DNA from: Paraphysomonas bandaiensis
Taxonomy: Eukaryota; Protista; Chrysophyceae
Length of the DNA stretch: 28,031 nucleotides
Direction of reading: 5' to 3'
Assembly (NCBI GenBank): GCA_965644295.1
Contig: CBFFRP010000564.1
Span: 1-28,031, forward strand
Below the pieces are notes generated by a model. It was not told the origin of the DNA. It ran no database searches and saw only the letters and a list, made by a program, of their open reading frames with translations. Shown here in pieces: positions 1 to 14,259 of this stretch (its first letter is position 1; every line of letters begins with the position of its first letter). Both the position numbers and the translations under genes were made by a program.

Positions 1-1323
1 CCTAAAAATCTGGCCGCGGAACAAATATTCAAGGGCAAGAAGCCAGGAAAACTTTTCAGAGATTTAAAGAAGAGCGCGGAGGTAGCAAATTCCAGAACGG
101 TTACCATCACGAGGGAAGAGAAGCGTTGCCCGGTGCGCATAGAATCTCTAAAGTTAGGAGTGGTGGCAAAAGCAATTAATGACATTTTAGTATTCCAAGA
201 GGAGGAGGAAACGGTAGTCAGGATACAGAAAGTTCTGTCCAGGAGTGTTAAGGATCATCTGCGAAATGTTTACAGCATTGCGTATTCAGATTTGGCTGCA
301 ATGGACTTGTCAGACTTATTGAGAATCGTTGCTAGAGAGACGCGAGTGTTCAATTGTGTGGGTTTCTACAACGAGCTCAGAGATGCTTTGAAGCACATCA
401 GAATTATGGAATGGAAACATGTAAACTCAGCCACTTTTGAAACGTTCTACAATCAGCAATTGAAGCTGATTCAGGCATTTAAGACCATATTGTCTATAAT
501 GTTGGACTCGGACAACAAGAAGTGGTGCCCGAGGGTTGATGATAAAGAATTCGGTTTAATTCGTCTTTTCAAAAACCTGAATGATGGAAGTTATGTGAAG
601 TTTGTACTGGGATGCATGTCTTCCAACCGCTTTGATTCTATGAATGAATTTTTTGAAGAGTACTCAGCTATTCTGTTGGATCACTACCAAGTAACTATAG
701 CTTACAAGCAAATACCTTTTGAGTCGAACATGCAGTTTCAACAAAAGCATGACGACTACATCAAAAGGAAGAGAGAGTTATTCAGCCAACACAACAATAG
801 CTCTAACTCTAGGAAGCCACAAACTAATCTACGTTTCTCTAGAGTGTCTCACATTGAAGCTTTTGATGATATAAACGAAGAGTGTGAGGATTATAGTTAC
901 TGTGAGGATGAGTTACATGTGGAGGAGGAAGCTTGGGATGCACCGAGTGAGACTTGGAAAACTGCCTTTCCAGGTTCACAACAGGACAATTCAGTGGAGT
1001 CTACGAAGGATACCACACCAGAGGAATTTAATCCCATGCTAGACGAAAGTCCTGATGTCGTCAAGGAACTGTCTGCGATGCATACCTCATATGAAACTCA
1101 GAACAAGAAGACTGAGAAGTACGGTTGTTTAAGGAAGATAATGTATGGGAAATGTAACAAACCGCAGTGCCCATACAATCATAATTCCAAATGTCTCCAA
1201 GATACTGCTGTCGAAATGAGAGAAAAGATCAACGCTTTCTTTCAAACGAAGGACGACACAGCACATCAGGAGAAACCTCCCGCTATCTTGAGGAGAGAAC
1301 GCTTCGGCGATTCTCGTCCTTGA
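1..1323 (+). CDS. gag: Gag-like protein of element A (5'-partial; frame is open from base 1)
   Basis: No stop in frame +1 from 1 to the TGA at 1321-1323. Lies directly upstream of pol. Has an acidic linker and a C-x8-C-x4-C-x3-H finger (CLRKIMYGKCNKPQCPYNH, 1126-1182). Called by position, not by recognised capsid homology. Confidence 0.8.
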   Translation, partial: PKNLAAEQIFKGKKPGKLFRDLKKSAEVANSRTVTITREEKRCPVRIESLKLGVVAKAINDILVFQEEEETVVRIQKVLSRSVKDHLRNVYSIAYSDLAAMDLSDLLRIVARETRVFNCVGFYNELRDALKHIRIMEWKHVNSATFETFYNQQLKLIQAFKTILSIMLDSDNKKWCPRVDDKEFGLIRLFKNLNDGSYVKFVLGCMSSNRFDSMNEFFEEYSAILLDHYQVTIAYKQIPFESNMQFQQKHDDYIKRKRELFSQHNNSSNSRKPQTNLRFSRVSHIEAFDDINEECEDYSYCEDELHVEEEAWDAPSETWKTAFPGSQQDNSVESTKDTTPEEFNPMLDESPDVVKELSAMHTSYETQNKKTEKYGCLRKIMYGKCNKPQCPYNHNSKCLQDTAVEMREKINAFFQTKDDTAHQEKPPAILRRERFGDSRP

Positions 1324-4300
1324 GGTAAGGAGGGATGTGAGGGTGTGGACCTGGATGAGTCTACAGTTAATGTTTGTGATGGAGATGCTGATTGCATGAA
1401 GCTCTCTAACTCTGAACATGAGACTAAAAATTCTTCCAAGGTTCGCACAGACAAGGATGAGGCAAAGCTGTACGCCTGCTATCCTTCCTCTAAAAGTTTT
1501 TCCTCAGCACATACCGTAGGTAGAGTAGTGATAGATAGAAAATTCAAAATGGAGGAATTAGTCAATGTATTGTGTGACACGGGGGCACTTGTGGCAAACT
1601 ATGTCGCAAAAGATTTAATTGAGAAACTTCGTGATAAACTACAGCCAAGCCGTTTCTACAAAGTGAAGCACAGAGTGGTATTAGCTGACAGCAGGACAGT
1701 CCAAGATTTGACTGAAGGAGTTCGACTGAATTTGGTATTGACTGATCCTAAGTCCCACACTTATCAATACACTGGAGAATTCTTGGTCATAGACATGAAA
1801 ACCAATGATATTATTTTGGGATTGCCTGCGCTGACTGGAAAGTTGTATCCTTTCATGTGTGCGGTTATGCGTGAGGCACATGAGACTCAAATCGAAGATG
1901 TCTCTAATAGTGAAAATTCGAATGTGTTGTCATCTCTGGTAGGGGACACGGTTGATTCTGATGACCGTGTGCACCCGTGGAGGAAAGCAAGTGAGGATAC
2001 CGCCCCAGAGGATGACGAAACAGAGTTGCCTGTCCAATTTAAAGATGCGTTGACATTCTTAGGAAAGTCTCGAGAGGAAGCTCTCCAAGACTATCATGAG
2101 CAGATTAAAACTCACGTTAGTGAAGAGTTGAAGAGTGGGACTAACATCATGGAATTGTTAACAACTAAAGCGGAAAAAGTGTTCGTGCCAGACGAGTGGA
2201 GCGGTGTGAGAGGTGTGGAGCCTTTGTCTCTGAAATGGAAAAGTACTCTCCCAGACAGGATGAAACCAAAGGCCAGGCCGATTAATCCAAAGCTGTGGGA
2301 GGCTTCGGAGAAGGAATTTCGACGATTGTGTGGCTATTTCTACAGAAAAAGTCGTTCTCCCTGGGCATCTTGCCTAGTGGTAGCTCCAAAAGCCACTCCT
2401 CCATACATACGTTTTTGTGGTGACTACGTGCAAATTAACAAGCATATGGAGGTAGGGAACTACACTATTCCCAATGTCAAGCATGAGCTTGACAAGATCA
2501 TCAACTTTCCACTGTACATGGACATAGACTTGACAAATGCTTTCCATCAGATTCCGTTGGCAGATGAAACATCAGAGAGGTTGTCTATTCAGACACCATG
2601 GGGGCAATATGCTCCAAACTTCATGCCAGAAGGCATTGCTCCTGCCACAGGTGTTCTACAAGAGACAGTGCGAGACATATTCAGTGACTTTTCTGAATGG
2701 GCAATTGTTATTTTTGATAATATGCTCATACTCGCACATGATGCTCAGGACGCCCATGAAAAATTTGAAAAGATTATTGACCGATGTATTGAAAGAAATG
2801 TAAAACTTAAAATGCCCAAGAGCTGGTTGGGATTTAGAAAAGTAGATTTCTTTGGATATGTTTGTCGACATAAGTCCTATGAAGTTAACCCCGAGAAAAA
2901 AGAAGCACTAGGAAAGATTCCGATGCCTACCACGACCAAGCAGGCTAGATCTCTTTTAGGCAAGGGTGTATTTTTCTCCAGCTTTACTCCAAAATACTCC
3001 GATTTGGTGGCTCATTTGACTGACATGACCAAAAAGACTTTTAATTGGGACAAAAGTACTTGGAGGCATGATTATGAAGCTGAATTCCGTCGCTTCATCA
3101 AGGGTCTTCAAGATTCATGTGAGCTGTTTTATCCAGACTATGAGCTGGAATGGACTTTACGAACCGATGCTAGTGAGTTGGGAGTAGGCGCTGTTTTGTT
3201 ACAGAAAAAGATATTTCCGAGTGGGGAAACACAATTACAGCCTATAGCTTTCATTTCGAAAAAATTTTCCACTCAGGCTCAGAAATGGGCGACCATTGAG
3301 CAAGAGGCTTATGGTATCTTCTATAGTGTCAAGCAATTAGCTTACTATTTGATTGGAAAGCAGTTCACCATTGAAACGGATCACAATAATCTGCTATGGA
3401 TGGAGGCATCAGAGGTACCGAAGATAACCAGGTGGAGGATTTTCCTACAATCTTTCAACTTTAATATTCGCCACATTTCTGGTGCTAAGAACTGGCTAGC
3501 GGATTGGTTGTCTCGGGAACATCAAGTAGCTGCCTTGTCAGGCATATTTTTAGATGAAGACTTGGATGATGTCTATTTTCTCGGCGATGATTGCACTGAG
3601 GACGAGTTTTTCAATTTCTTGGGAAATTTTATGGAACCTGAGGATCGAGAAATAGCACCTCCATCCGAGACACAAGTTACTCCTGAAGAAGCGTTGCTCC
3701 AAGTACATAACGCCCGAGTAGGACACATGGGAGGTAGAGCTACATGGATACGTTTGAATAAGGAGTTCCCGGGTCATAACATTCCTTATAAGGTTGTTGA
3801 GGATTATATTTCCAAGTGTCCAAATTGTGTGAAAACGAGATTAGCTATGAGAGAGGCTCTCATTCCTATAGTTCGAAATCTCAAGCCGCCAAATGCTAGG
3901 AGCGCTATTGGCATTGATGCAGTAGAGATTACACCGCATGGCGCGGATGGATATACTCATATCAATGTGGTGGTTAATCTTTTCACCAAGTTAGTATACC
4001 TTGAACCGGTAAAGGGAGTCACGGCCCTTAATCTTGCCAATACGGTTTGGAAATACTGGACTCACTATGGACACACAGATCTCATTATTTCGGATCAAGG
4101 ACCGGACTTGACTTCCGATCTATTCAAACAGTTGACCGAATATATGGGTGTCAGGCACACTTTCAGCATCGCTAACCGTCACGCTAACGGTTGTGAGCGC
4201 ATTATTGGGGAGGTTGTGCGACACTTGCGTGCTTTGGTCTATGATAACAGTGAGCGTGAAGAACGCAGAGATGTTTTTGAGGATCCCAGCTGGATAGCCA

Positions 4301-5310
4301 ATGTCCAATATATTTTGAATTCGGAGGTTTCATCAGAAACAGGCTATTCTCCTTTCGAGTTGACATTTGGCTCCAATGACCTCGAATATCTAACCATGGA
4401 CATCAAAGAGTTACCAGAAAAGGCTCATGCTCGCCTTTCTGCTCTCAATGATCAATTGGCGAAACTTCGTGAAGCTTCCAAAGCGTATCAACAAAAACTG
4501 GCTAGCGAGAGAGCCAGTGAGGGTGTTCATCCTGACAGACAAAACAGATATCAACCTGGCGACTTTGTATTGTTCGACAAGGGCGCTAAGGTGCATCCAA
4601 AAATGTCTCACAGGTACATGGGACCATTTACAGTCAAACATCAATACAAAAACGATGTTGACTGCCAGCATCTGGCGACTGGACAAATGGTACGCGTTTC
4701 TGTCAGTGATGTAAAATTATTTCCAGGAGATCGTGACACAGCATACAAAATGGCCTTGCGTGATCATGAACAACATGTCATAGATAAAATCCTTTATTAT
4801 AAAGGTGATCGCGACGTGAGATCTACTATGACTTTTACTGTGCGTTTCCAAGATGGTGATGTTAGAGAAGTGCCTTATAGCAAGGATCTTTTTGACTCGA
4901 TACCCTACGCTGAGTTTTGCTCCAGCAAAAGATATCTATACCATCTTATTTATTCTACTGAAGGTGCTAAGAAATACGTATCAGACATTCGCAAACAACC
5001 GATCACTCAATTTCAACCTGGTGATCTCGCATATGTCGATTTGCGAATTTATGGCGATGTCTGGTATGATGAGTTGGATCTACCAGATTCTCATCTGCTT
5101 ACTTATGTAGCTCCTATCCAGTTCACACACTGGTACCACAAGAGCTCTAAGCGAGTATTATCGGTAAAAGATCTTCTCACTCTCCGCACCTACCGTTATG
5201 ACAACTACCTGGTACATTGTTTCGTTCATTCAGAGGTGAATACCAGCAATATGGTACTAGTAGATGAGGATTTTGCCCGACAATTTCCACAAGTCCGTGA
5301 GTCTTATTAG
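1324..5310 (+). CDS. pol: Pol polyprotein of element A: aspartic protease, RT, RNase H, integrase, chromo-like C-terminus
   Basis: Protease LCDTGA (~1570-1587). RT SPWAS, DIDLTNAFHQI, IFDN. RNase H TDASELGVGAVL, EQEAYGI, TDHNNL, ADWLSR. Integrase H-x5-H...CPNC, IGIDAV / SDQG / CERI (DDE) and a GPF motif. The frame is open from 1324, in frame with gag. Confidence 0.97.
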   Translation, partial: GKEGCEGVDLDESTVNVCDGDADCMKLSNSEHETKNSSKVRTDKDEAKLYACYPSSKSFSSAHTVGRVVIDRKFKMEELVNVLCDTGALVANYVAKDLIEKLRDKLQPSRFYKVKHRVVLADSRTVQDLTEGVRLNLVLTDPKSHTYQYTGEFLVIDMKTNDIILGLPALTGKLYPFMCAVMREAHETQIEDVSNSENSNVLSSLVGDTVDSDDRVHPWRKASEDTAPEDDETELPVQFKDALTFLGKSREEALQDYHEQIKTHVSEELKSGTNIMELLTTKAEKVFVPDEWSGVRGVEPLSLKWKSTLPDRMKPKARPINPKLWEASEKEFRRLCGYFYRKSRSPWASCLVVAPKATPPYIRFCGDYVQINKHMEVGNYTIPNVKHELDKIINFPLYMDIDLTNAFHQIPLADETSERLSIQTPWGQYAPNFMPEGIAPATGVLQETVRDIFSDFSEWAIVIFDNMLILAHDAQDAHEKFEKIIDRCIERNVKLKMPKSWLGFRKVDFFGYVCRHKSYEVNPEKKEALGKIPMPTTTKQARSLLGKGVFFSSFTPKYSDLVAHLTDMTKKTFNWDKSTWRHDYEAEFRRFIKGLQDSCELFYPDYELEWTLRTDASELGVGAVLLQKKIFPSGETQLQPIAFISKKFSTQAQKWATIEQEAYGIFYSVKQLAYYLIGKQFTIETDHNNLLWMEASEVPKITRWRIFLQSFNFNIRHISGAKNWLADWLSREHQVAALSGIFLDEDLDDVYFLGDDCTEDEFFNFLGNFMEPEDREIAPPSETQVTPEEALLQVHNARVGHMGGRATWIRLNKEFPGHNIPYKVVEDYISKCPNCVKTRLAMREALIPIVRNLKPPNARSAIGIDAVEITPHGADGYTHINVVVNLFTKLVYLEPVKGVTALNLANTVWKYWTHYGHTDLIISDQGPDLTSDLFKQLTEYMGVRHTFSIANRHANGCERIIGEVVRHLRALVYDNSEREERRDVFEDPSWIANVQYILNSEVSSETGYSPFELTFGSNDLEYLTMDIKELPEKAHARLSALNDQLAKLREASKAYQQKLASERASEGVHPDRQNRYQPGDFVLFDKGAKVHPKMSHRYMGPFTVKHQYKNDVDCQHLATGQMVRVSVSDVKLFPGDRDTAYKMALRDHEQHVIDKILYYKGDRDVRSTMTFTVRFQDGDVREVPYSKDLFDSIPYAEFCSSKRYLYHLIYSTEGAKKYVSDIRKQPITQFQPGDLAYVDLRIYGDVWYDELDLPDSHLLTYVAPIQFTHWYHKSSKRVLSVKDLLTLRTYRYDNYLVHCFVHSEVNTSNMVLVDEDFARQFPQVRESY

Positions 5311-5472: not shown

Positions 5473-5487
5473 AAAGAGGGGAGGGGG
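5473..5487 (+). promoter_or_regulatory. Polypurine tract of element A
   Basis: AAAGAGGGGAGGGGG, then CAA, then the LTR start TGTGAC. Element B has the same arrangement. Confidence 0.9.
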
Positions 5488-5638
5488 CAATGTGACCACG
5501 TGGCATCTCGCGTGCCTTACTTACGTGGCTATAGTGTTTTCCTAAGGGGCTACAACAAGACACTAGATAGACTAACTACCAAGAAAACACTCAGAAATAA
5601 CAGTCATTATTATTTATCACAGCATTGAAAACAACCAT

Positions 5639-6376
5639 TCACTTACGGCGCAGTTTACTTTTTCGGTGATACCACTCACCGTAGTCAGCGAGCAGCTCTT
5701 CACCTGCCGGTATCGGTCTCAGAGTCTTGACCCAGACCACATCCAACCCAGACTCATCCATGCAGAATTCACAGTTGTAAGTCAGACCCGCAGCGAGATT
5801 CTCATCAAACAAGGTGTTTACGAACCTGCCGTGGTTATAAGGAGTCCTATGATATTTCCTCTCATGGCTGGGAACCGACATGAGATAACCTACGTCATAC
5901 TTCTCATGCTCGGCATCGATGTACACGGAGTCTTGCACACGAAGAATATAAGCACCCCAATTGGGGCACCGGTCATATATTTCTCCGCTATAGAGACACA
6001 CTAGGAATCCAGACGCCAGGTCCACTAGAGCAAAGAGTCCTTTCTGCTGGGGACTCAAGCCATCTGGGTTGGCTATGTTGAGCCCCTTCCTAACCTCGAC
6101 GTATGGATTGTCGGTTCCACAACGAGCATAGAAATCCAGAACGGAGGCGCAAACATCAGGGGCTTCATCAAGGGATGCACTGTGCAAATAGGGGACTACT
6201 CTGCAGTGTTTACCACGCACGTCCGAGTCTCCTTGTGGACATCGGACTGCAAAGTCTCTGGCCCGCCTCTTAGCTGCCTCTTCGCGAAAGGCCTGACGCC
6301 GGCGGTCTTCGTACTTCTTCTTGGAAGGCCGAACACGTGATTTGCATTTGCTTGGGTCTGTAATGGGTTCTTTCAT
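5639..6376 (-). CDS. SET-domain protein (putative lysine methyltransferase), 245 aa, antisense inside the LTR of element A
   Basis: SET motifs in canonical order: KGLFA, LYSGEI, YIDA, GRFVN, NCEF, VWVKTLRPIPAGEELLADYG. Arg/Lys-rich N- and C-termini. Intronless, ATG start, no post-SET cysteines. Confidence 0.92.
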   Translation of the reverse strand: MKEPITDPSKCKSRVRPSKKKYEDRRRQAFREEAAKRRARDFAVRCPQGDSDVRGKHCRVVPYLHSASLDEAPDVCASVLDFYARCGTDNPYVEVRKGLNIANPDGLSPQQKGLFALVDLASGFLVCLYSGEIYDRCPNWGAYILRVQDSVYIDAEHEKYDVGYLMSVPSHERKYHRTPYNHGRFVNTLFDENLAAGLTYNCEFCMDESGLDVVWVKTLRPIPAGEELLADYGEWYHRKSKLRRK

Positions 6377-6759: not shown

Positions 6760-6922
6760 AGTTGATTGAAACATAAGTTTACCTGTAATAATATCACTTC
6801 TTTGGTCTCATTGTCTTGATTCCTATACAGTGATAGTAGTTAGCGTTATCACGAGCCATAGTCTTGGTTATCAAACCAAACTGTGAGGTGACAGTTGAGT
6901 TGTCAAACGAGGCTGCGTCATA

Positions 6923-9807
6923 ATGTTAATATCAACAAGCACATGCAAGTGGGTAATTATACAATTCCCAATGTCAAGCATGAATTGGACAAGATCATCA
7001 ATTTCCCATTGTATATGGACATCGACTTGACCAACGCTTTCCATCAGATACCTCTAGCGGAAGAAACATCAGAGAGGCTTTCTATCCAGACGCCATGGGG
7101 CCAATATGCGCCAAAGTTCATGCCAGAAGGTATTGCGCCGGCTACTGGAATTCTGCAAGAGGTAGTCAGGGAAATATTTGAAGATTTTTCTGACTGGGCC
7201 ATTGTAATATTTGACAACATGTTGATATTGGCCAACGACCCTCAAGATGCGTATCAGAAATTTGAGAAAGTGATTGACAGATGCATCGAGAGGAATCTCA
7301 AACTGAAAATGCCAAAGAGTTGGCTTGGATTTAGAAAAGTAGACTTCTTCGGATACGTATGCAGACACAAATCCTATGAAGTCAATCCTGAGAAGAAGGA
7401 AGCCCTAGGCAAAATCCCAATGCCTACCAACACCAAACAAGCGAGGTCTCTGCTTGGCAAGGGCGTGTTCTTTTCCAGTTTTACCCCTAGATATTCAGAC
7501 TTGGTTGCTCATCTCACGGATTTGACCAAATCGAAATTCAATTGGGACAAGACTACGTGGCGGCACGATTATGAGGCTGAATATCGTCGCTTCATAAAAG
7601 GCCTGCAAGATTCCTGCGAATTGTTCTACCCAGACTACAATTTGGAGTGGACACTGCGTACTGACGCTAGTGAGCTAGGAATCGGCTCGGTGCTTCTGCA
7701 GAAAAAGATTCTCGCAGATGGAACAGAGCAGTTGCAACCCATTGCCTTCCTGTCAAAGAAGTTTTCAGCTCAGGCTCAGAAATGGGCTACGATAGAGCAA
7801 GAAGCTTATGGTATTTACTACAGTGTCAAGCACTTAGCGTACTATTTGATTGGGAAGCAGTTCACTATAGAGACTGACCACAATAATCTCTTGTGGATGG
7901 AGACGTCTGAAGTACCTAAGATCACAAGATGGAGAATTTTCTTGCAATCTTTCAACTTCAGCATTAAACACATATCGGGTGCCAAGAATTGGTTAGCCGA
8001 TTGGTTATCTCGGGAGCATCAAGTTGCGGCGTTGTCCGGTATATTCTTAGATGAAGACTATGCCGATGCCTACTTCCTTGGAGAGGACTGCACTGAGGAT
8101 GAATTTTTTAACTTCTTGGGCAATTTTATGAACCCAGAAGACAGGGAAGTATCTCCTCATGCGCAAAGTTCAGTCACTCCCGAGGATGCCTTGCAACAAG
8201 TACATAATGCCCGAGTTGGACATCTCGGTGGGCGAGCCACTTGGATTCGACTTAATAAGCAATTCCCCGGCCATGGAATTCCTTACAAAGTAGTCGAAGA
8301 CTTCATTGCGAAGTGTCCAAACTGTGTTAAGACTAGATTGGCGATGAAAGAAGCGCTGATCCCTATAGTCCGAAACCTTAAGCCTCCGAGCGCTCGGAGT
8401 GCTATTGGTATTGATGCGGTAGAAATCACACCCCATGGTGCTGATGGATACACGCACATTAATGTCGTAGTCAACCTGTTCACCAAGTTAGTTTATCTTG
8501 AGCCAGTCAAAGGAGTGACTGCCCTCAACTTGGCAAACACGGTATGGAAGTATTGGAGTTACTACGGACACACTGATCTTATCATCTCAGATCAGGGTCC
8601 TGACCTAACTTCCGATCTTTTCAAACAACTGACTGAATATATGGGCGTCCGACACACCTTCAGCATAGCCAACAGGCATGCTAATGGTTGTGAACGCATC
8701 ATCGGTGAGGTGGTCCGACATTTGCGTGCCCTAGTATATGAAAACAGCAAGCGTGTAGAACGAAAGGATGTTTTTGAGGATCCCAGCTGGATACCCAGCG
8801 CTCAATACATTCTGAATTCAGAAGTCTCATCCGAGACGGGGTACTCACCCTTTGAGCTCACTTTTGGCTCTAATGATCTGGAATATTTAACTATGAATAT
8901 ACAGACTTTGCCTGAGCGTGCACACGCCAGACTGACTGCTCTTAATGAACAGCTAGAAGGCCTACGGGCGGCTTCCAAAACTTACCAGCAGCAGTTAGCG
9001 AGTGAACGTGCTGGGGAGGGAGTTCACCCGGACAAGCAGAACCGATATCAACCGGGCGACTTCATTTTATTTGACAAAGGCGCCAAGGTTCATCCCAAGA
9101 TGTCACATCGATACATGGGACCTTTTGTTGTTAAGACCCAGTACAAAAATGACATTGATTGTCAGCACCTTGCTACAGGGCAAGTGGTACGTGTTTCAGT
9201 GACAGACGTCAAACTGTTTCCAGGTGATAGAGAAACTGCGTACAGCATGGCTCTACGAGACCAGGATCAGCATGTCATTGACAAGATTCTCTACTATCGG
9301 GGTGACAGAGAGTCACGCTCCACTTTGATTTTTACTGTGAGATTTCAGGATGGTGATGTCAGAGAAGTGCCTTATAGCAAGGACCTTTTTGACTCAGTGC
9401 CTTACGCGGACTTTTGTTCCAGCAAACGGTACCTCTACCACCTGATTTATCCAGCGGAGGGTGCCAAGAAATATATCTCGGACATCCGACGCCAGTCTAT
9501 CACTCAGTTCAAACCCGGTGACCATGCATATGTTGACCTACGCATTTATGGCGACGTATGGTACGACGGACTGCAGTTACCAGACTCCCACTTACTGACC
9601 TATGTAGCTCCGATCCAGTTCACACACTGGTATCATCGAAGCTCTAGGAGAGTATTATCCGTCAAGGATCTTCTCACTCTCCGCACTTACCGTTATGACA
9701 ACTACCTCGTGCATTGTTTCGTTCACCCAGAACTAGACACTAGCACTATGGTACTAGTCGACAAGGACTTGGCTACACGCTACCCTCAAGTCCTTGAGTC
9801 CGTTTAG
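6923..9807 (+). pseudogene. pol: Pol of element B (RT C-part, RNase H, integrase, chromo-like domain), 5'-disrupted by insertion
   Basis: Colinear with A pol from (Y)VNINKHM versus A's DYVQINKHM. No stops or frameshifts up to TAG at 9805-9807. The computed start at 6895 lies in A's LTR and is an artefact. Confidence 0.93.
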
Positions 9808-9959: not shown

Positions 9960-9982
9960 AAAAAAAAAAAAGGGAGGCGGGG
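9960..9982 (+). promoter_or_regulatory. Polypurine tract of element B
   Basis: A12-GGGAGGCGGGG, then CAA, then TGTGACCACGTGGCAT. Confidence 0.88.
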
Positions 9983-10124: not shown

Positions 10125-10648
10125 CTAGGACGGGAGGTACAATTTCCCATAATCTGCCAACAGCTCTTCGCCGGCCGCAACTGCCCGAGTGGTCTGCACC
10201 CAGACCACGTCCAAACCGGACTCATCTACTACAAATTCGCAGTTGAAGCGCCAGCCAGCAGCATGGTCAGAAGGATACACCGTGTTTATATACCTACCAT
10301 GATTATGAGGCACCCGGGCCAAATAAGCTTGGGACCCCAGCGGCCAAAGGTAACCTATGTCCCGAGTGTCCCACACCTCTGGTAGAAGTCCAACACGCAC
10401 TGGCAGACTTCACCTCTTGCATCATACGATGACGAGTGCAAGTAAGGAACAACTTTGCACAGTTGCCTATGTGCATCAAGTTGTCCCTCGGGGCATCGAA
10501 CGGAGCGTTCCCACATACGCCTAGCAGCAGCCCTTTCACGGTAGGCACACCGATACCGATTGGACCTACGTAATAGAGAGCCCCGTCCCCTACGATTGCG
10601 AGGTTTAGGCTTAGTGGAGCCCGCTGCTGGATCTGTAGTGGCAGACAT
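10125..10648 (-). pseudogene. SET-domain gene of element B's LTR with an internal frameshifting deletion
   Basis: The N-part (VRCPEG...CKVVPYLHS...VCQCVLDFYQRCGT) and the C-part (DIGYL...NHGRYINT...NCEFVVDESGLDVVWVQTTRAVAAGEELLADYG) both match the A protein but lie in different frames. About 70 codons, including KGLFA, YSGE and YIDA, are missing at ~10360-10370. Confidence 0.9.
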
Positions 10649-10923
10649 TGTTTATGCAGCAATGGATATGATGTATGTATCTGATGTGGACATTGGTTCT
10701 TAGTCTGAGATAGTAGATGTAGAAAAAGCATCATACGGTATGCTGCACACTCACATACATGTTGGTCCATTGTAATACAGTAGCAGTACTCTGAATACGC
10801 AGTATTCAACGGCTAATTTACAAACTGGCGAGTGTGGTGTGTGGTGTCATCGCGAGTGTGGTGTGTTGTGCTTGTTCTATGTTGCATTGCTTTACAGCTC
10901 AGTGTTTTGTTAAGTGTTGTTCT

Positions 10924-11000
10924 GTTTGTACACTAGTGTTCTGACTTCACTGGAGGTGGGGTTTGCGCGGTGATTCTTGGAGGGAGTCACTAGTACAAGC
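10924..11000 (+). other. Predicted three-stem RNA structure in the LTR of B
   Basis: GTTTGTAC (10924-10931) / GTACAAGC (10993-11000) encloses GACTTCACT-GGA-GGTGGGGTT (10943-10963) and GTGATTCTT-GGA-GGGAGTCAC (10970-10990). Confidence 0.65.
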
Positions 11001-11134
11001 TTGCAACGCTTGACATACTGTTTAGAGTAATAATCATCCTGTTCTCCTGCAATCAGACGTACATATAGCTCTGGTTAACTCATTGTGTTTGTTTCTGCTG
11101 CACAGCCTTGGTTATCAAACCTGGCTGTGTCATA

Positions 11135-12172
11135 CAGCACCCTTCCACTTATTCTCTCCATCTGCTTCTTCACCCTCCTCACTTCACCCAGTCCCATCAA
11201 GTGCTCTAAGTCCGCTCTCCTCATGAGCTCTCTCGTCCTCATGCTCCACGGCTCCCACATCGTAGTTTGATATTTCACAGCCTTTCCCTGTACTCCTTCC
11301 ACAGCTCTTCTATGCTCTGTTTCCACAATCTTCCTCTGCTCTGCTTCCACCGTCTTCTTCTGTTCTGCTTCCACCATCTTCTTCTCCTTATAATAACATT
11401 TCGGGCAGCTCCTCATGTAGAATGGCACTGCACCTCTCTTCATCACCACACCGCAATCTCTACATCGCTTGTTCTCCGGCAGCGTCCTCACCCACTGGTG
11501 CTTGCCCTTCATTATAGCCCACATTTCATCTCGGTCAACCTCCTCCTTCGTCGCCTTTTCCTGCTGCTCCATCAACCAATCCGGTACCAATGTTTCCTCT
11601 GCAATCTCTCTTTCATCTTCCATAACAGTCTCTTTACTGCTTATGAACTTCAGCAGGTCTTCTTCCCCTTTATCCATGCATCTTTTCTCCTTCACCTCAC
11701 TCATCCTCATCTTTACTTCTTTCATCCGGTGCCTAGAGTACTCTAACAGTCCTCTGTCGCCCTCTTTATCGTGTTCGATTTTCCTTATTACTGCGCTCCT
11801 TCCTGAGTTTTCATCATCTTCGCCACTACTATCTCCCCCCATCTCCAGGTCCTTACTCATCAGCCTGGGTCCACGCCTCTCTTTTCCCTGTTCCTTTGTC
11901 TCCTCATGACCCCATCGGTCCTCCTGCACTTGGATTCGAGGCTCCTCCTTGGACTCTGGCTCCTTTTCTTCCCCATAGTAAAGATTGACATCCCTCTCAT
12001 CAGATGGTATCTCAATCTGGGACCGTGCCAACAATAGTGTGCTGGGTGGATCATGGCTGAGTTGGCCATCCTCAACCACGTTACCCAGCCCACGTTGTCC
12101 ACCAAGTGTGGCAACATCGGGTGATTGAGTATCATCCCTGTGGGTTTCAGTGAACATGTCATCTTTATCCAT
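11135..12172 (-). pseudogene. First ORF (gag position) of element C, truncated by insertion of B
   Basis: Glu/Lys/Arg-rich ORF with CxxC-x15-CxxC (CRDC...CPKC) and 8-aa tandem repeats (KKMVEAEQ/KKTVEAEQ/RKIVETEH/RRAVEGVQ). The last ~20 codons of the computed ORF are read-through into B's LTR. No capsid homology recognised. Confidence 0.55.
12089..12104 (-). promoter_or_regulatory. Primer binding site of element C, tRNA-Ala type
   Basis: The complement CCCACGTTGTCCACCA fits tRNA positions 61-76 with C61, U70 (the G3:U70 alanine determinant), discriminator A73 and CCA. It lies 2 nt from the LTR end. Confidence 0.7.
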
Positions 12173-14259
12173 GTGTGCAACAGACGGCAGGTAGATAGAC
12201 AGCGCTTAACTTCACCAACACTTATATTGAATGTCTGATTATTTAGCAATAGGCGTTGAAAGCCTGCACCAATTAGTGGCTAGAAGAATGCTAGTCATAC
12301 TAGTTAGACTACTACCCGTAACTAATCAATACAAACTCTTTTATCCTACTATTTAACGCTACAGAAGCTGCTTGTGCGTCGCCGCAAGCACCAAGGTGCA
12401 ACCACTTCCGTTCTTAGTGTGTGTTATGAGGCTCGCCATGATCGTGTGTCCTGGGACTCACCGGCGCGTGTGATCTGGAGGTCTCCTCTTGGGATGAGAC
12501 TCCACTCGCTATATGATAGATAGCCTTATGTACCTCACGGGGACTGACTTATTAGCCTTATGGCAGTTAGGGGAAACAGTAATATGCCCTTCTGAGATTG
12601 GCGATCTGGTGGCCTTCCTTTAGGCATTGTTCCAAGTGGCTCGGAGGTATGTGGATGAAGGTCTTGCAAAAGGTTATGGCCTACTGTGAAGAAGCGTCGA
12701 AATCGGCTCTTTTGCTGTCTTAGCCAGCGGTAGAGAACACATGCAAGAGGGTGTATAGCTGTACAGGGGTGGGATGTGAGGGTCATCCGGTGTGTCCAGC
12801 AACAGGGAGTCGAGAGGGAGTGTGATGGTGCAAGAGAGGCAACATCTGATTGAGGAGAGTGAGACTGCGCAACAGAACAAGAGTCACTGAGGTCGAGTAC
12901 TCTGATAGACCTATGCACGAGATGATCGTCATGATGATGATGGTCTGGAGGAGACACTCGGACGTCCTCAGCTGCCCTTGTTAGTGTCTGTGTTAGTGCA
13001 GGGGGGTACAGGCTGAGGCATAGAGTATGTGTGGAAGGAAGATGACGGCAAGGTATCAGAGACGAAGGGAGGGGAGATGGTTTGTCTGGGGGTTTTCTAG
13101 GAGGAGGTAGAGTGTACTGTGTGTGTGTATGACACTGCAGTGGTGTTATGAGTGTGTTGGACAGAGAGAGAGAGCTGGAGATGTGTCCAACAGTACAGGT
13201 AGACAGGTACATGGACATGGTGATGTGTCCAACAGCAGTAGAGGTATACACGGAATGGTATACATCCTGTAGGACACAGTAGTACAGTAGTCGAGTATAC
13301 CGTATGCGGAATACAGTGTCTATCCAATGAGATGGATGGGCTGTGGGGGTGATAGGTGAACAGGGTGAGGGGGTAGCCTGCTGGGTGGATGGACCACAGA
13401 CAAACCATGTTGGGTTGGGCTGGGTTGTCGTCAGGAGACGGCCCTGTTGTGCAGTGGAGAGGTGTCGAGAGGAGACAGGGGTTGCAGAGAAGGTACATGG
13501 GGGCCGTTTGCGTGGATCTGCTCGCACGAGCCATGCTGTAAGTGGTTGTATCCGTAGAGAACCGTGTAGGAGACGAAGGTGTCTCCTTAGGTGATAGCAT
13601 ATGCATGCGGTCAGCGCTGCATTGGTGCAGGCACGTTGTTTAACTGAAGTAGTTGAGTAGGGTGAAGGTTGCAAGGCCAGGCAGGGGGGCTTGGAGCGTG
13701 TACAACATGGTGTGACAGGTAATTTGTCGGAAGCGTGGTGGTCAACAAAATGCAGCAGTAAGGGAGTGTAAAAGGCCCTGGGCACACTGATGTGACTCAG
13801 CCACGTTCTCAATAGAGACATTGGGCTTGGAGCTGGTTAATAGGGTGAAACTTTATGTTGGACTGTATTTGCCATCGTAGGGCAGAGAATTTTTCACCAA
13901 CACTTAACTGTGCTTATTATACCCTTTTACCTTATAATTATGTCCTATCTAAAAACCCGTATAACTTAACCTGTTTTTCAATAGCTGTTCTAGAGATGGG
14001 TTTCTAGCCATAAATAGCTAGTTTCTACTTCCAGAAATATCCCGCCCCTACAGCAACCTTTTACTGTCCTACTATCTACTCCATATTGCCTCATACAATG
14101 CCTACACACTATACAACCCTGTATCTGGCCTTAATACTCGTATCCCTTGACCTTTTCTTAATCATCTTCTACCTCTTATTGCCTATACTACTTCATCTTG
14201 GCCCTTATATCACAACAACCTTATAATCCACCATTTCCACTACACCCAAAATTGCCACA
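12107..14259 (-). repeat. Putative 5' LTR of element C (2153 bp)
   Basis: Perfect 8-bp terminal inverted repeat TGTGGCAA/TTGCCACA with an adjacent PBS. The second LTR is not in the window. Confidence 0.68.
12535..13821 (-). CDS. 428-aa ORF of unknown function inside the putative LTR of element C
   Basis: Long ATG-started open frame rich in Pro/Thr/His/Ser/Cys, with RKRPP/RKPPD/RPPD motifs and an in-frame 42-bp duplication (~13180-13250). No recognised domain; the openness may partly reflect base composition. Confidence 0.3.
   Translation of the reverse strand: MSLLRTWLSHISVPRAFYTPLLLHFVDHHASDKLPVTPCCTRSKPPCLALQPSPYSTTSVKQRACTNAALTACICYHLRRHLRLLHGSLRIQPLTAWLVRADPRKRPPCTFSATPVSSRHLSTAQQGRLLTTTQPNPTWFVCGPSTQQATPSPCSPITPTAHPSHWIDTVFRIRYTRLLYYCVLQDVYHSVYTSTAVGHITMSMYLSTCTVGHISSSLSLSNTLITPLQCHTHTQYTLPPPRKPPDKPSPLPSSLIPCRHLPSTHTLCLSLYPPALTQTLTRAAEDVRVSPPDHHHHDDHLVHRSIRVLDLSDSCSVAQSHSPQSDVASLAPSHSLSTPCCWTHRMTLTSHPCTAIHPLACVLYRWLRQQKSRFRRFFTVGHNLLQDLHPHTSEPLGTMPKGRPPDRQSQKGILLFPLTAIRLISQSP

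Follow-up and report, generated by a model that had tools for sequence, protein, structure and literature searches.

The classic example of a transposon that picks its landing site by reading chromatin is the chromodomain fused to an integrase. Such capture is known in chromoviruses and, as reported independent acquisitions, in the oomycete Chronos elements and in the diatom Copia elements of the CoDi-I group (PMC5348765), and a survey of 172 eukaryotic genomes recovered transposons fused to Chromo, PHD and SET domains (10.1101/2021.11.30.470311); the description of the diatom GyDi elements mentions no chromodomain (PMC2806351). Here we analyzed a 28,031-nucleotide stretch of Paraphysomonas bandaiensis (contig CBFFRP010000564.1, positions 1 to 28,031, forward strand; hereafter the window), which starts inside copy A of a Ty3/gypsy-type long terminal repeat (LTR) retrotransposon, since the contig itself begins within A, and which contains a second copy, B. 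The pol proteins of these elements end in a C-terminal tail in which a chromo-like domain is predicted to precede a Tudor/MBT-like barrel, an arrangement on an integrase for which we found no description in the limited literature examined. Judging from structure models and from analogy, we propose with moderate confidence that the last ~190 residues of pol are a bipartite chromatin-tethering module that biases insertion. By its architecture and predicted fold, the tail would be a novel version of the targeting domain that chromovirus integrases carry. The parts of pol concerned are as follows, with residues and confidence (pLDDT, predicted local distance difference test) taken from an AlphaFold2 model of the tail.

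1345-5310, forward strand: open reading frame (ORF) of pol, copy A (1321 aa), with reverse transcriptase, RNase H, integrase and the C-terminal tail
4543-4719, forward strand: integrase C-terminal SH3-like domain (GPF/Y module; motifs YQPGDFV and MGPF), directly upstream of the tail
4741-4773, forward strand: conserved lead-in A-x3-A-x2-D-x-D/E-Q, joining the integrase SH3 to domain 1
4774-4950, forward strand: domain 1, predicted divergent chromo-like domain (model residues 12-70, pLDDT 88-96)
4951-5001, forward strand: basic linker helix (model residues 71-87, helix 73-85)
5002-5301, forward strand: domain 2, predicted SH3-like beta-barrel with helical insertions, closest to MBT/Tudor (model residues 88-187)

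The pol of copy A matches Pfam families RVT_1 (residues 378-505), RT_RNaseH (598-704), Integrase_H2C2 (782-831) and rve (857-944), and no Pfam match was found beyond residue ~1070, that is, over the last ~250 residues. The stretch equivalent to the integrase SH3 domain matches PF24626 (SH3_Tf2-1) in 27 of 83 external relatives (best E 1e-6). The last 179 aa of the protein (4771-5307) lie directly past the GPF module (MGPFTVK) and contain every motif that a preliminary description of this DNA had quoted for them, namely the HVIDKILYYKGDR start, FTVRFQDGDVREVPY, FQPGDLAYVDLR, YGDVWYD and FTHWYH; the same motifs recur in copy B with K/R and Q/K changes. Across the final 268 aa, copies A and B share 85% of their residues without gaps (~80% identity in DNA), and no competing ORF of at least 100 aa overlaps the tail on either strand.

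The tail is widespread within and beyond this genome. A six-frame search of 62.6 Mb in 669 contigs, with the 179 tail residues as query, returned at least 153 matches with identities from 100% down to 33%, and ~59 of the 150 matches listed sit in open frames of at least 1300 aa. A profile of 16 genomic members, run against 1.84 billion public representatives (clusters at 50% identity), matched 1,115 clusters at E<=1e-3 and 812 at E<=1e-10. In all 150 public matches listed the module was covered essentially end to end, and it forms the C-terminus of the protein (median 4 residues after it; at most 25 residues in 129 of 148). Cluster members were drawn from ENA, JGI, Logan and NCBI assemblies, in which annotation is absent or reads 'hypothetical protein'. 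The lead-in is likewise conserved across the family (A1 100%, A5 94%, D8 99%, Q11 93%). Between lineages, synonymous divergence (dS) is saturated in both tail halves, non-synonymous divergence (dN) amounts to 0.04-0.4, and their ratio (omega), where computable, is 0.05-0.12, equal to that of the adjoining integrase SH3 domain. The tail is thus under strong purifying selection and a functional, ancient part of these elements, and a degenerate junk tail is ruled out by the conservation and by omega <=0.12. Graded genomic matches, public clusters and constraint together confirm that the tail is more than a chance reading frame. Separately, one contig of the genome carries a tandem array (L048:2159-4244; G000 contig C181, ~10158-12243) with a 424-bp unit in 4.9 copies and 98% matches, which repeats the end of an A-lineage pol gene (tail residues ~41-179, at the 3' side); barrel-coding sequence has thus given rise to a young, satellite-like array.

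We modelled the whole tail with AlphaFold2 (189 residues, window 4741-5307; alignment of 16 genomic members) and obtained two domains with a helix between them at a mean pLDDT of 91.1 and a predicted template modelling score of 0.83. The lead-in was modelled as a helix at low confidence (pLDDT 45), because the model begins there. Domain 1 consists of three strands (14-21, 31-36 and 41-45) followed by helices (48-70), and in a structural search with VIA-align against 48,161 PDB representatives all 22 of the top rows aligning to residues ~1-68 were chromo or chromoshadow domains (Z 4.4-5.7). These included CHD4 (Z 5.6), CHD1 (Z 5.4), Chp1, Rhino, SUV39H1, Polycomb and CBX4, the cpSRP43 chromodomain (Z 5.4; root-mean-square deviation, rmsd, 2.1 over 50 residues; 18% identity), and the chromoshadow domains of HP1alpha (Z 5.4), Chp2 (Z 5.3) and Swi6 (Z 5.2). 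The modelled three-stranded antiparallel sheet with a C-terminal helix can be superposed on these folds, at modest Z, and it is the exclusively chromo/chromoshadow match list that makes the assignment convincing. The models therefore support a chromo-like domain 1 at the level of the fold, in agreement with the preliminary description, which had called this half chromo-like from its sequence. In the ESM Atlas, the nearest named clusters of domain 1 were all PF00385, with a score of only 0.83, which we take as a lead only. The linker that follows has a fixed length of 17 aa and a net charge of +2, both in the window copy and as the family median.

Domain 2, modelled alone from 28 sequences, reached a pLDDT of 94.7 and forms a five-stranded SH3-like barrel that can be superposed on Tudor/MBT cores. 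Its strands 1 and 2 are separated by a helical insertion, which carries a conserved aromatic-G-x-x-W-Y motif. We know of no such insertion in Royal-family readers. Its best structural matches were the SETDB1 Tudor (Z 5.8; rmsd 1.8 over 54 residues), the MBT repeats of L3MBTL1 (Z 5.8 over 77 aligned residues) and KIAA1798 (Z 5.6) and the BAHCC1 tandem Tudor (Z 5.2-5.6), followed by PHF20L1, SMN, TDRD3 and Spindlin; MBT repeats superpose over 76-77 residues, and about 17 of 28 matches, the best ones included, are MBT, Tudor or PWWP readers. The SETDB1 triple-Tudor module was also the best Foldseek match of the whole model (E 2e-3). Generic SH3-like barrels (myosin SH3, CarD, the MscS beta-domain) come within 1 Z unit of the best match, and therefore the predicted barrel fold is solid while membership of the Royal family (Tudor/MBT) is only probable. 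The ~100 aa that the preliminary description had set apart as an additional barrel thus do appear to be a separate SH3-like domain, with MBT and Tudor as its best and most frequent matches. At ten of its positions (98, 104, 108, 109, 122, 128, 131, 151, 161 and 182), 80% or more of the family sequences have an aromatic residue. No usable match to domain 2 was obtained in the ESM Atlas, and a profile comparison of the hhalign type detected no relation between domains 1 and 2. The start of domain 2 (QPGDxAYV) resembles that of the integrase SH3 (QPGDFVLF), an echo to which the preliminary description had drawn attention; hhalign aligns the two over 15 columns only, the QPGDxV motif, at a probability of 5.5%. 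The echo does not extend past this motif, there is hence no evidence for duplication, and we rejected domain 2 as a duplicate of the integrase SH3.

We then mapped potential ligand-binding residues of domain 1 onto HP1 by a motif-level alignment made by eye, not by superposition, with residue frequencies from 138 divergent relatives.

Position 12: family Tyr 37%, Phe 33%, His 25%; window copy His
Position 36: family Phe 86%, Tyr 14%, never Trp; window copy Phe
Positions 38-39: family Asp 93%, Gly 80%; window copy Asp-Gly
Position 43: family Trp 87%; window copy Glu
Position 46: family Trp/Tyr/Phe 98%; window copy Tyr

From this alignment, we take position 12 to be the HP1 cage residue Tyr24 and position 36 to be Trp45. 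The HP1 loop bearing Tyr48 presumably corresponds to Gly39/Asp40, where the tail is three residues shorter and has no aromatic, and position 43 is presumably the structural Trp of the TWEP motif, lost in the window's lineage. The three HP1-type cage positions in the window copy are therefore His, Phe and none, and by this motif-level mapping no HP1/Pc-type three-residue aromatic cage was found across the family. The preliminary description, which had seen a chromodomain pattern without the cage tryptophans, was correct on this point. The family pattern is nevertheless chromo-like (position 12 aromatic in 95%, position 36 Phe/Tyr in 99%, Asp38-Gly39 kept, Trp43 in 87%), and at the sequence level no more than two-thirds of the cage appears to be present, next to a conserved Asp. 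F-x-D-G is the cage motif of 53BP1-type Tudors, which prefer lower methylation states, and we regard its presence here as a lead rather than a result. The median net charge in the family is -2 for domain 1 and -2 for domain 2 (-5 for domain 2 in the window copy); with both domains mildly acidic, a basic peptide ligand fits better than DNA.

Set beside chromovirus integrases (MAGGY, Tf1 and plant group II), the tail shares a small predicted chromo-fold domain straight after the SH3/GPF module at the end of pol. The chromovirus architecture, with a chromodomain after GPY/F, is seen in the predicted fold but did not show up in sequence comparison. The aromatic cage is incomplete, which is also true of the plant group II domains, and the expected role, to tether integration to chromatin, would be the same. 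Unlike chromoviruses, the tail has a domain 1 that is invisible to Pfam Chromo in all genomic copies and in 83 external members, and it always carries a second, ~100-aa Tudor/MBT-like barrel; in the motif-level alignment, cage position 2 is Phe/Tyr instead of Trp and the loop of position 3 is three residues shorter. The two small beta-barrel/sheet domains in tandem recall the Royal-family tandem readers (SETDB1, L3MBTL1, BAHCC1, 53BP1), and the F-x-D-G motif of domain 1 recalls the KDM4A Tudors (in a sub-threshold alignment). In contrast to these readers, the tail shows an identity of 7-9%, no hidden Markov model (HMM) match and Z of 5-6, the same as generic SH3-like barrels. Domain 2 also resembles the integrase SH3 (PF24626; the retroviral integrase C-terminal domain) in being a predicted SH3-like barrel with P-G-D-x-V in its first strand, but it exceeds that domain by ~40 aa, is acidic and has many conserved aromatics.

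Downstream of pol, the two copies carry a SET-domain gene in antisense orientation, as one ORF in A and broken in B.

5639-6376, reverse strand: SET-domain ORF of copy A, 3' of pol (Pfam PF00856, E 3.8e-7)
6895-9807, forward strand: pol ORF of copy B, 5' end truncated, aligning to residues 362-1320 of A pol at 88% identity
9238-9804, forward strand: tail of copy B (domain 1 ~9271-9447, domain 2 ~9499-9798)
10128-10651, reverse strand: broken SET remnant of copy B, in two pieces in different frames

Copy B lies at a constant offset of 4497 nt from copy A, and its SET survives as two pieces that align with residues 160-235 and 42-87 of SET (57-59% identity). Three lineages in the genome carry SET, namely the A-type, the B-type (many of them broken) and a lineage at 65% identity (L033). 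By tblastn and phmmer, no SET was found in the 87% lineage, in the 68% lineage or in any of the 33-46% lineages, which amounts to at least five lineages that keep the tail. These SET-less lineages hold the tail under the same constraint, and the tail is therefore independent of an element-borne SET. The 87% lineage, the closest to A, comprises 13 near-identical copies and thus must have been active recently. Among external relatives most contigs end less than 1 kb past pol and are uninformative on SET, and one element on a 586-kb contig (P0009/L049, sample ERZ25071330) has an antisense SET in the same position beside a tail that is only 44% identical; the SET and tail combination is therefore old or recurrent. 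Its SET gene (L049:10047-11036, reverse strand) encodes a 329-aa protein with a phmmer E of 1e-21 to the SET of copy A. Another element of the same sample (L055:8348-9127, reverse strand) has a 259-aa antisense ORF 3' of pol with no Pfam match and no SET, and the antisense slot 3' of pol seems to hold varied cargo. The pairing of tail and SET highlighted by the preliminary description thus recurs in the element of another organism and yet is no rule, and SET is at most an optional add-on to a pre-existing module.

The preliminary description had also suggested insertion of these elements into their own kind. The 3' LTR end of A lies within ~40 nt of the start of B pol homology (codon ~362); only this 3' junction of A is in the window, since the contig starts inside A, and an insertion of A into B is no more than plausible. 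Copies of the 87% lineage diverge from one another 1193-1195 nt past the pol stop, where the element ends with a YA terminus. Among eight such copies whose 3' flank extends for ~300 nt, two are inserted in 68%-lineage elements, one antisense to pol and the other in the sense of gag, and a third lies in a repeat that recurs near another family member. The two nested SET-less elements (L013 and L016; G000 C161 ~17.7 kb and C119 ~98.7 kb) have flanks 98% identical to L031/L032. Overall, ~3 of 24 examined 3' junctions lie in kin (binomial P ~0.01-0.04, on a baseline of ~2-3% of the genome that is our own estimate from 153 copies x ~7 kb), and a hand count over the genome matches listed gave 18 same-contig pairs within 15 kb against ~5 expected. 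Nesting in kin is therefore observed, as had been suggested, at a modest and suggestive excess, in which targeting is not separated from retention; nesting and clustering are compatible with targeted integration or with preferential survival in repeat-rich DNA.

In the reading that we favor, the very divergent chromo-like domain, the short basic helix and the Tudor/MBT-like SH3-type barrel evolve, and probably fold, as one unit. Like the integrases of chromoviruses, this unit would attach the pre-integration complex to some feature of the nucleosome. This feature could be a histone tail, possibly with a lysine in a low methylation state, or a chromatin protein, and docking would bias insertion to chromatin that is rich in repeats or silent, where fresh insertions cause little damage. 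From the modelled structures and this analogy we infer chromatin binding, the kind of ligand and an effect on target choice. Gao et al. (2008) reportedly observed that plant group II chromodomains without cage residues still target heterochromatin. The position of the module fits as well, as it adjoins the integrase SH3/GPF domain just as the chromodomains of chromoviruses, Chronos and CoDi-I do (PMC5348765). We also count in its favor the confident models with their reader-rich match lists, the end-to-end conservation and purifying selection, the chromo-like family pattern, the acidic charge, and the nesting and clustering in the genome.

Several results weigh against this reading. At the sequence level, the Pfam scan of the window copy gave no Chromo match at E<=0.1, Pfam Chromo matched none of the 16 genomic members at E<=10 and none of the 83 divergent external members at E<=1, and a whole-genome scan with PF00385 at E<=10 yielded 20 matches, none of them on a module copy. 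PDB sequence searches, run with the single sequence and with profiles of the module (16 and 41 sequences) and of domain 1, found no reader domain. Tudor and MBT HMMs produced isolated weak matches (PTM_DIR17_Tudor at E 0.006-0.09 in one or two members, Tudor_5 at E 0.052 in one), and across the genomic and 83 external members no Tudor/MBT family match was obtained; sub-threshold HMMER alignments (E ~0.2) placed the F-x-V-x-F-x-D-G stretch on the same motif of KDM4A Tudor domains. The chromodomain pattern of the preliminary description therefore did not carry over to a tie of either half to the Chromo or Tudor families by any sequence method. On the structural side, Z of 5.2-5.8 lies within the common range of the tool for unrelated folds and is individually not significant, and Foldseek against PDB and BFVD gave no match at E<=1e-3, with only irrelevant phage proteins from BFVD. 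The third cage residue is absent family-wide, and the window copy has His at the first position and Glu in place of the TWEP-type Trp. As for insertion sites, no related coding sequence was seen in the 3' flanks of fifteen further elements for which at least 2 kb was available, and clustering is also expected from the purging of harmful insertions.

The module could alternatively bind proteins and read no methyl mark, an explanation that we consider doubtful, although the most serious of the alternatives. The first half would then be chromoshadow-like (dimerisation, peptide-motif binding) or cpSRP43-like (Arg-rich peptides), and the role of the barrel would be to contact a host factor or to promote the assembly of integrase multimers in the intasome. 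Chromoshadow domains and cpSRP43 indeed score as high as histone-binding chromodomains, and cpSRP43 superposes most closely (rmsd 2.1) and shares the most residues (18% identity); the family as a whole lacks a complete aromatic cage, and protein-binding generic SH3-like barrels (myosin SH3, CarD) are among the domain 2 matches. A chromoshadow-type dimer, however, would have no need of the aromatics at positions 12 and 36, which are kept in 95-99% of 138 divergent members and lie beside the conserved Asp38, and most top matches of domain 2 are histone readers. This explanation overlaps with chromatin tethering, as targeting could also proceed via a chromatin-bound partner. The tail could instead extend the C-terminal domain of the integrase by a further nucleic-acid-binding part, whether a second copy of the SH3 or a barrel that binds DNA, and so hold the intasome more firmly on its target DNA. 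The shared QPGD start of domain 2 and the integrase SH3 speaks for it, as does the presence, low in the match lists, of DNA-binding SH3-like barrels (PWWP with single-stranded DNA, CarD) and of PFV (prototype foamy virus) integrase; given that the profile match between the two barrels stops at 15 columns (probability 5.5%), that both domains are net acidic, unlike DNA-binding C-terminal domains, and that domain 1 has no nucleic-acid-binding relatives among its matches, we judge it very unlikely.

The preliminary description had gone further and proposed that the SET protein of the element writes a methyl mark, that the tail reads the same mark and that new copies land in or beside older kin, a scenario that we find improbable. 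It draws on the antisense SET just 3' of pol in copy A, B-type copies and the 65% lineage, on the homologous SET in the same position in another organism (phmmer 1e-21, tail 44% identical), and on the nesting, with copy A abutting B pol and with a gag and a pol of 68%-lineage elements each interrupted by a copy of the 87% lineage. The tail, however, is far more widespread than SET, with the 87%, 68% and 33-46% lineages SET-less under selection; the two nested copies belong to a SET-less lineage; many B-type SETs are broken, the window's included; and the other foreign-sample element has a different antisense ORF and no SET. In its fullest form, a self-contained chromatin system of a clade of marine-protist retrotransposons, in which SET writes a histone mark, the bipartite tail reads it and old copies thereby mark safe sites, while SET-less lineages free-ride on the marks of kin or host, would likewise be a long shot. 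Writer-reader coupling is speculative and is not required by the data.

With at least 1,100 clusters (50% identity) and abundance in marine metagenomes, the tail is a candidate domain family for curation. The module is undetectable by current domain databases, and therefore Pfam-based surveys of transposon-captured chromatin domains would miss this family. Its predicted chromo-like plus Tudor/MBT-like design suggests combinatorial or multivalent recognition, and close lineages with and without an element SET may offer a natural experiment on whether a transposon can write and read its own target mark.

Canonical chromodomains occur elsewhere in the genome. Pfam detects them at 47-53 bits in at least eight ORFs of 349-352 aa that resemble a multi-copy family (G000 C288:644039, C297:1061367, C510:14256, C510:5406, C298:200013, C321:486, C461:32407 and C2:199661). 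Two ORFs of 1614 aa (C150:175321 and C218:171827) have weak Chromo matches (20.6 bits) and may belong to another chromodomain-bearing element.

The remainder of the window holds further parts of the element and its surroundings.

133-1323: gag of copy A

In this gag, residues ~337-352 (window 1141-1188) form a Cys/His finger with a weak zf-CCCH_12 match (PF25542, E 0.041) that replaces the usual CCHC knuckle. A purine-rich tract, AAAGAGGGGAGGGGG, lies at 5473-5491, 163 nt past the pol stop, has a conserved counterpart at 9968 in copy B, and probably represents the polypurine tract at which the 3' LTR begins. Between 10300 and 27400, ten ORFs of 130-427 aa on both strands are without a Pfam match at E<=0.01, and at 11-14 kb both GC and AT are strongly skewed, with a change of sign.

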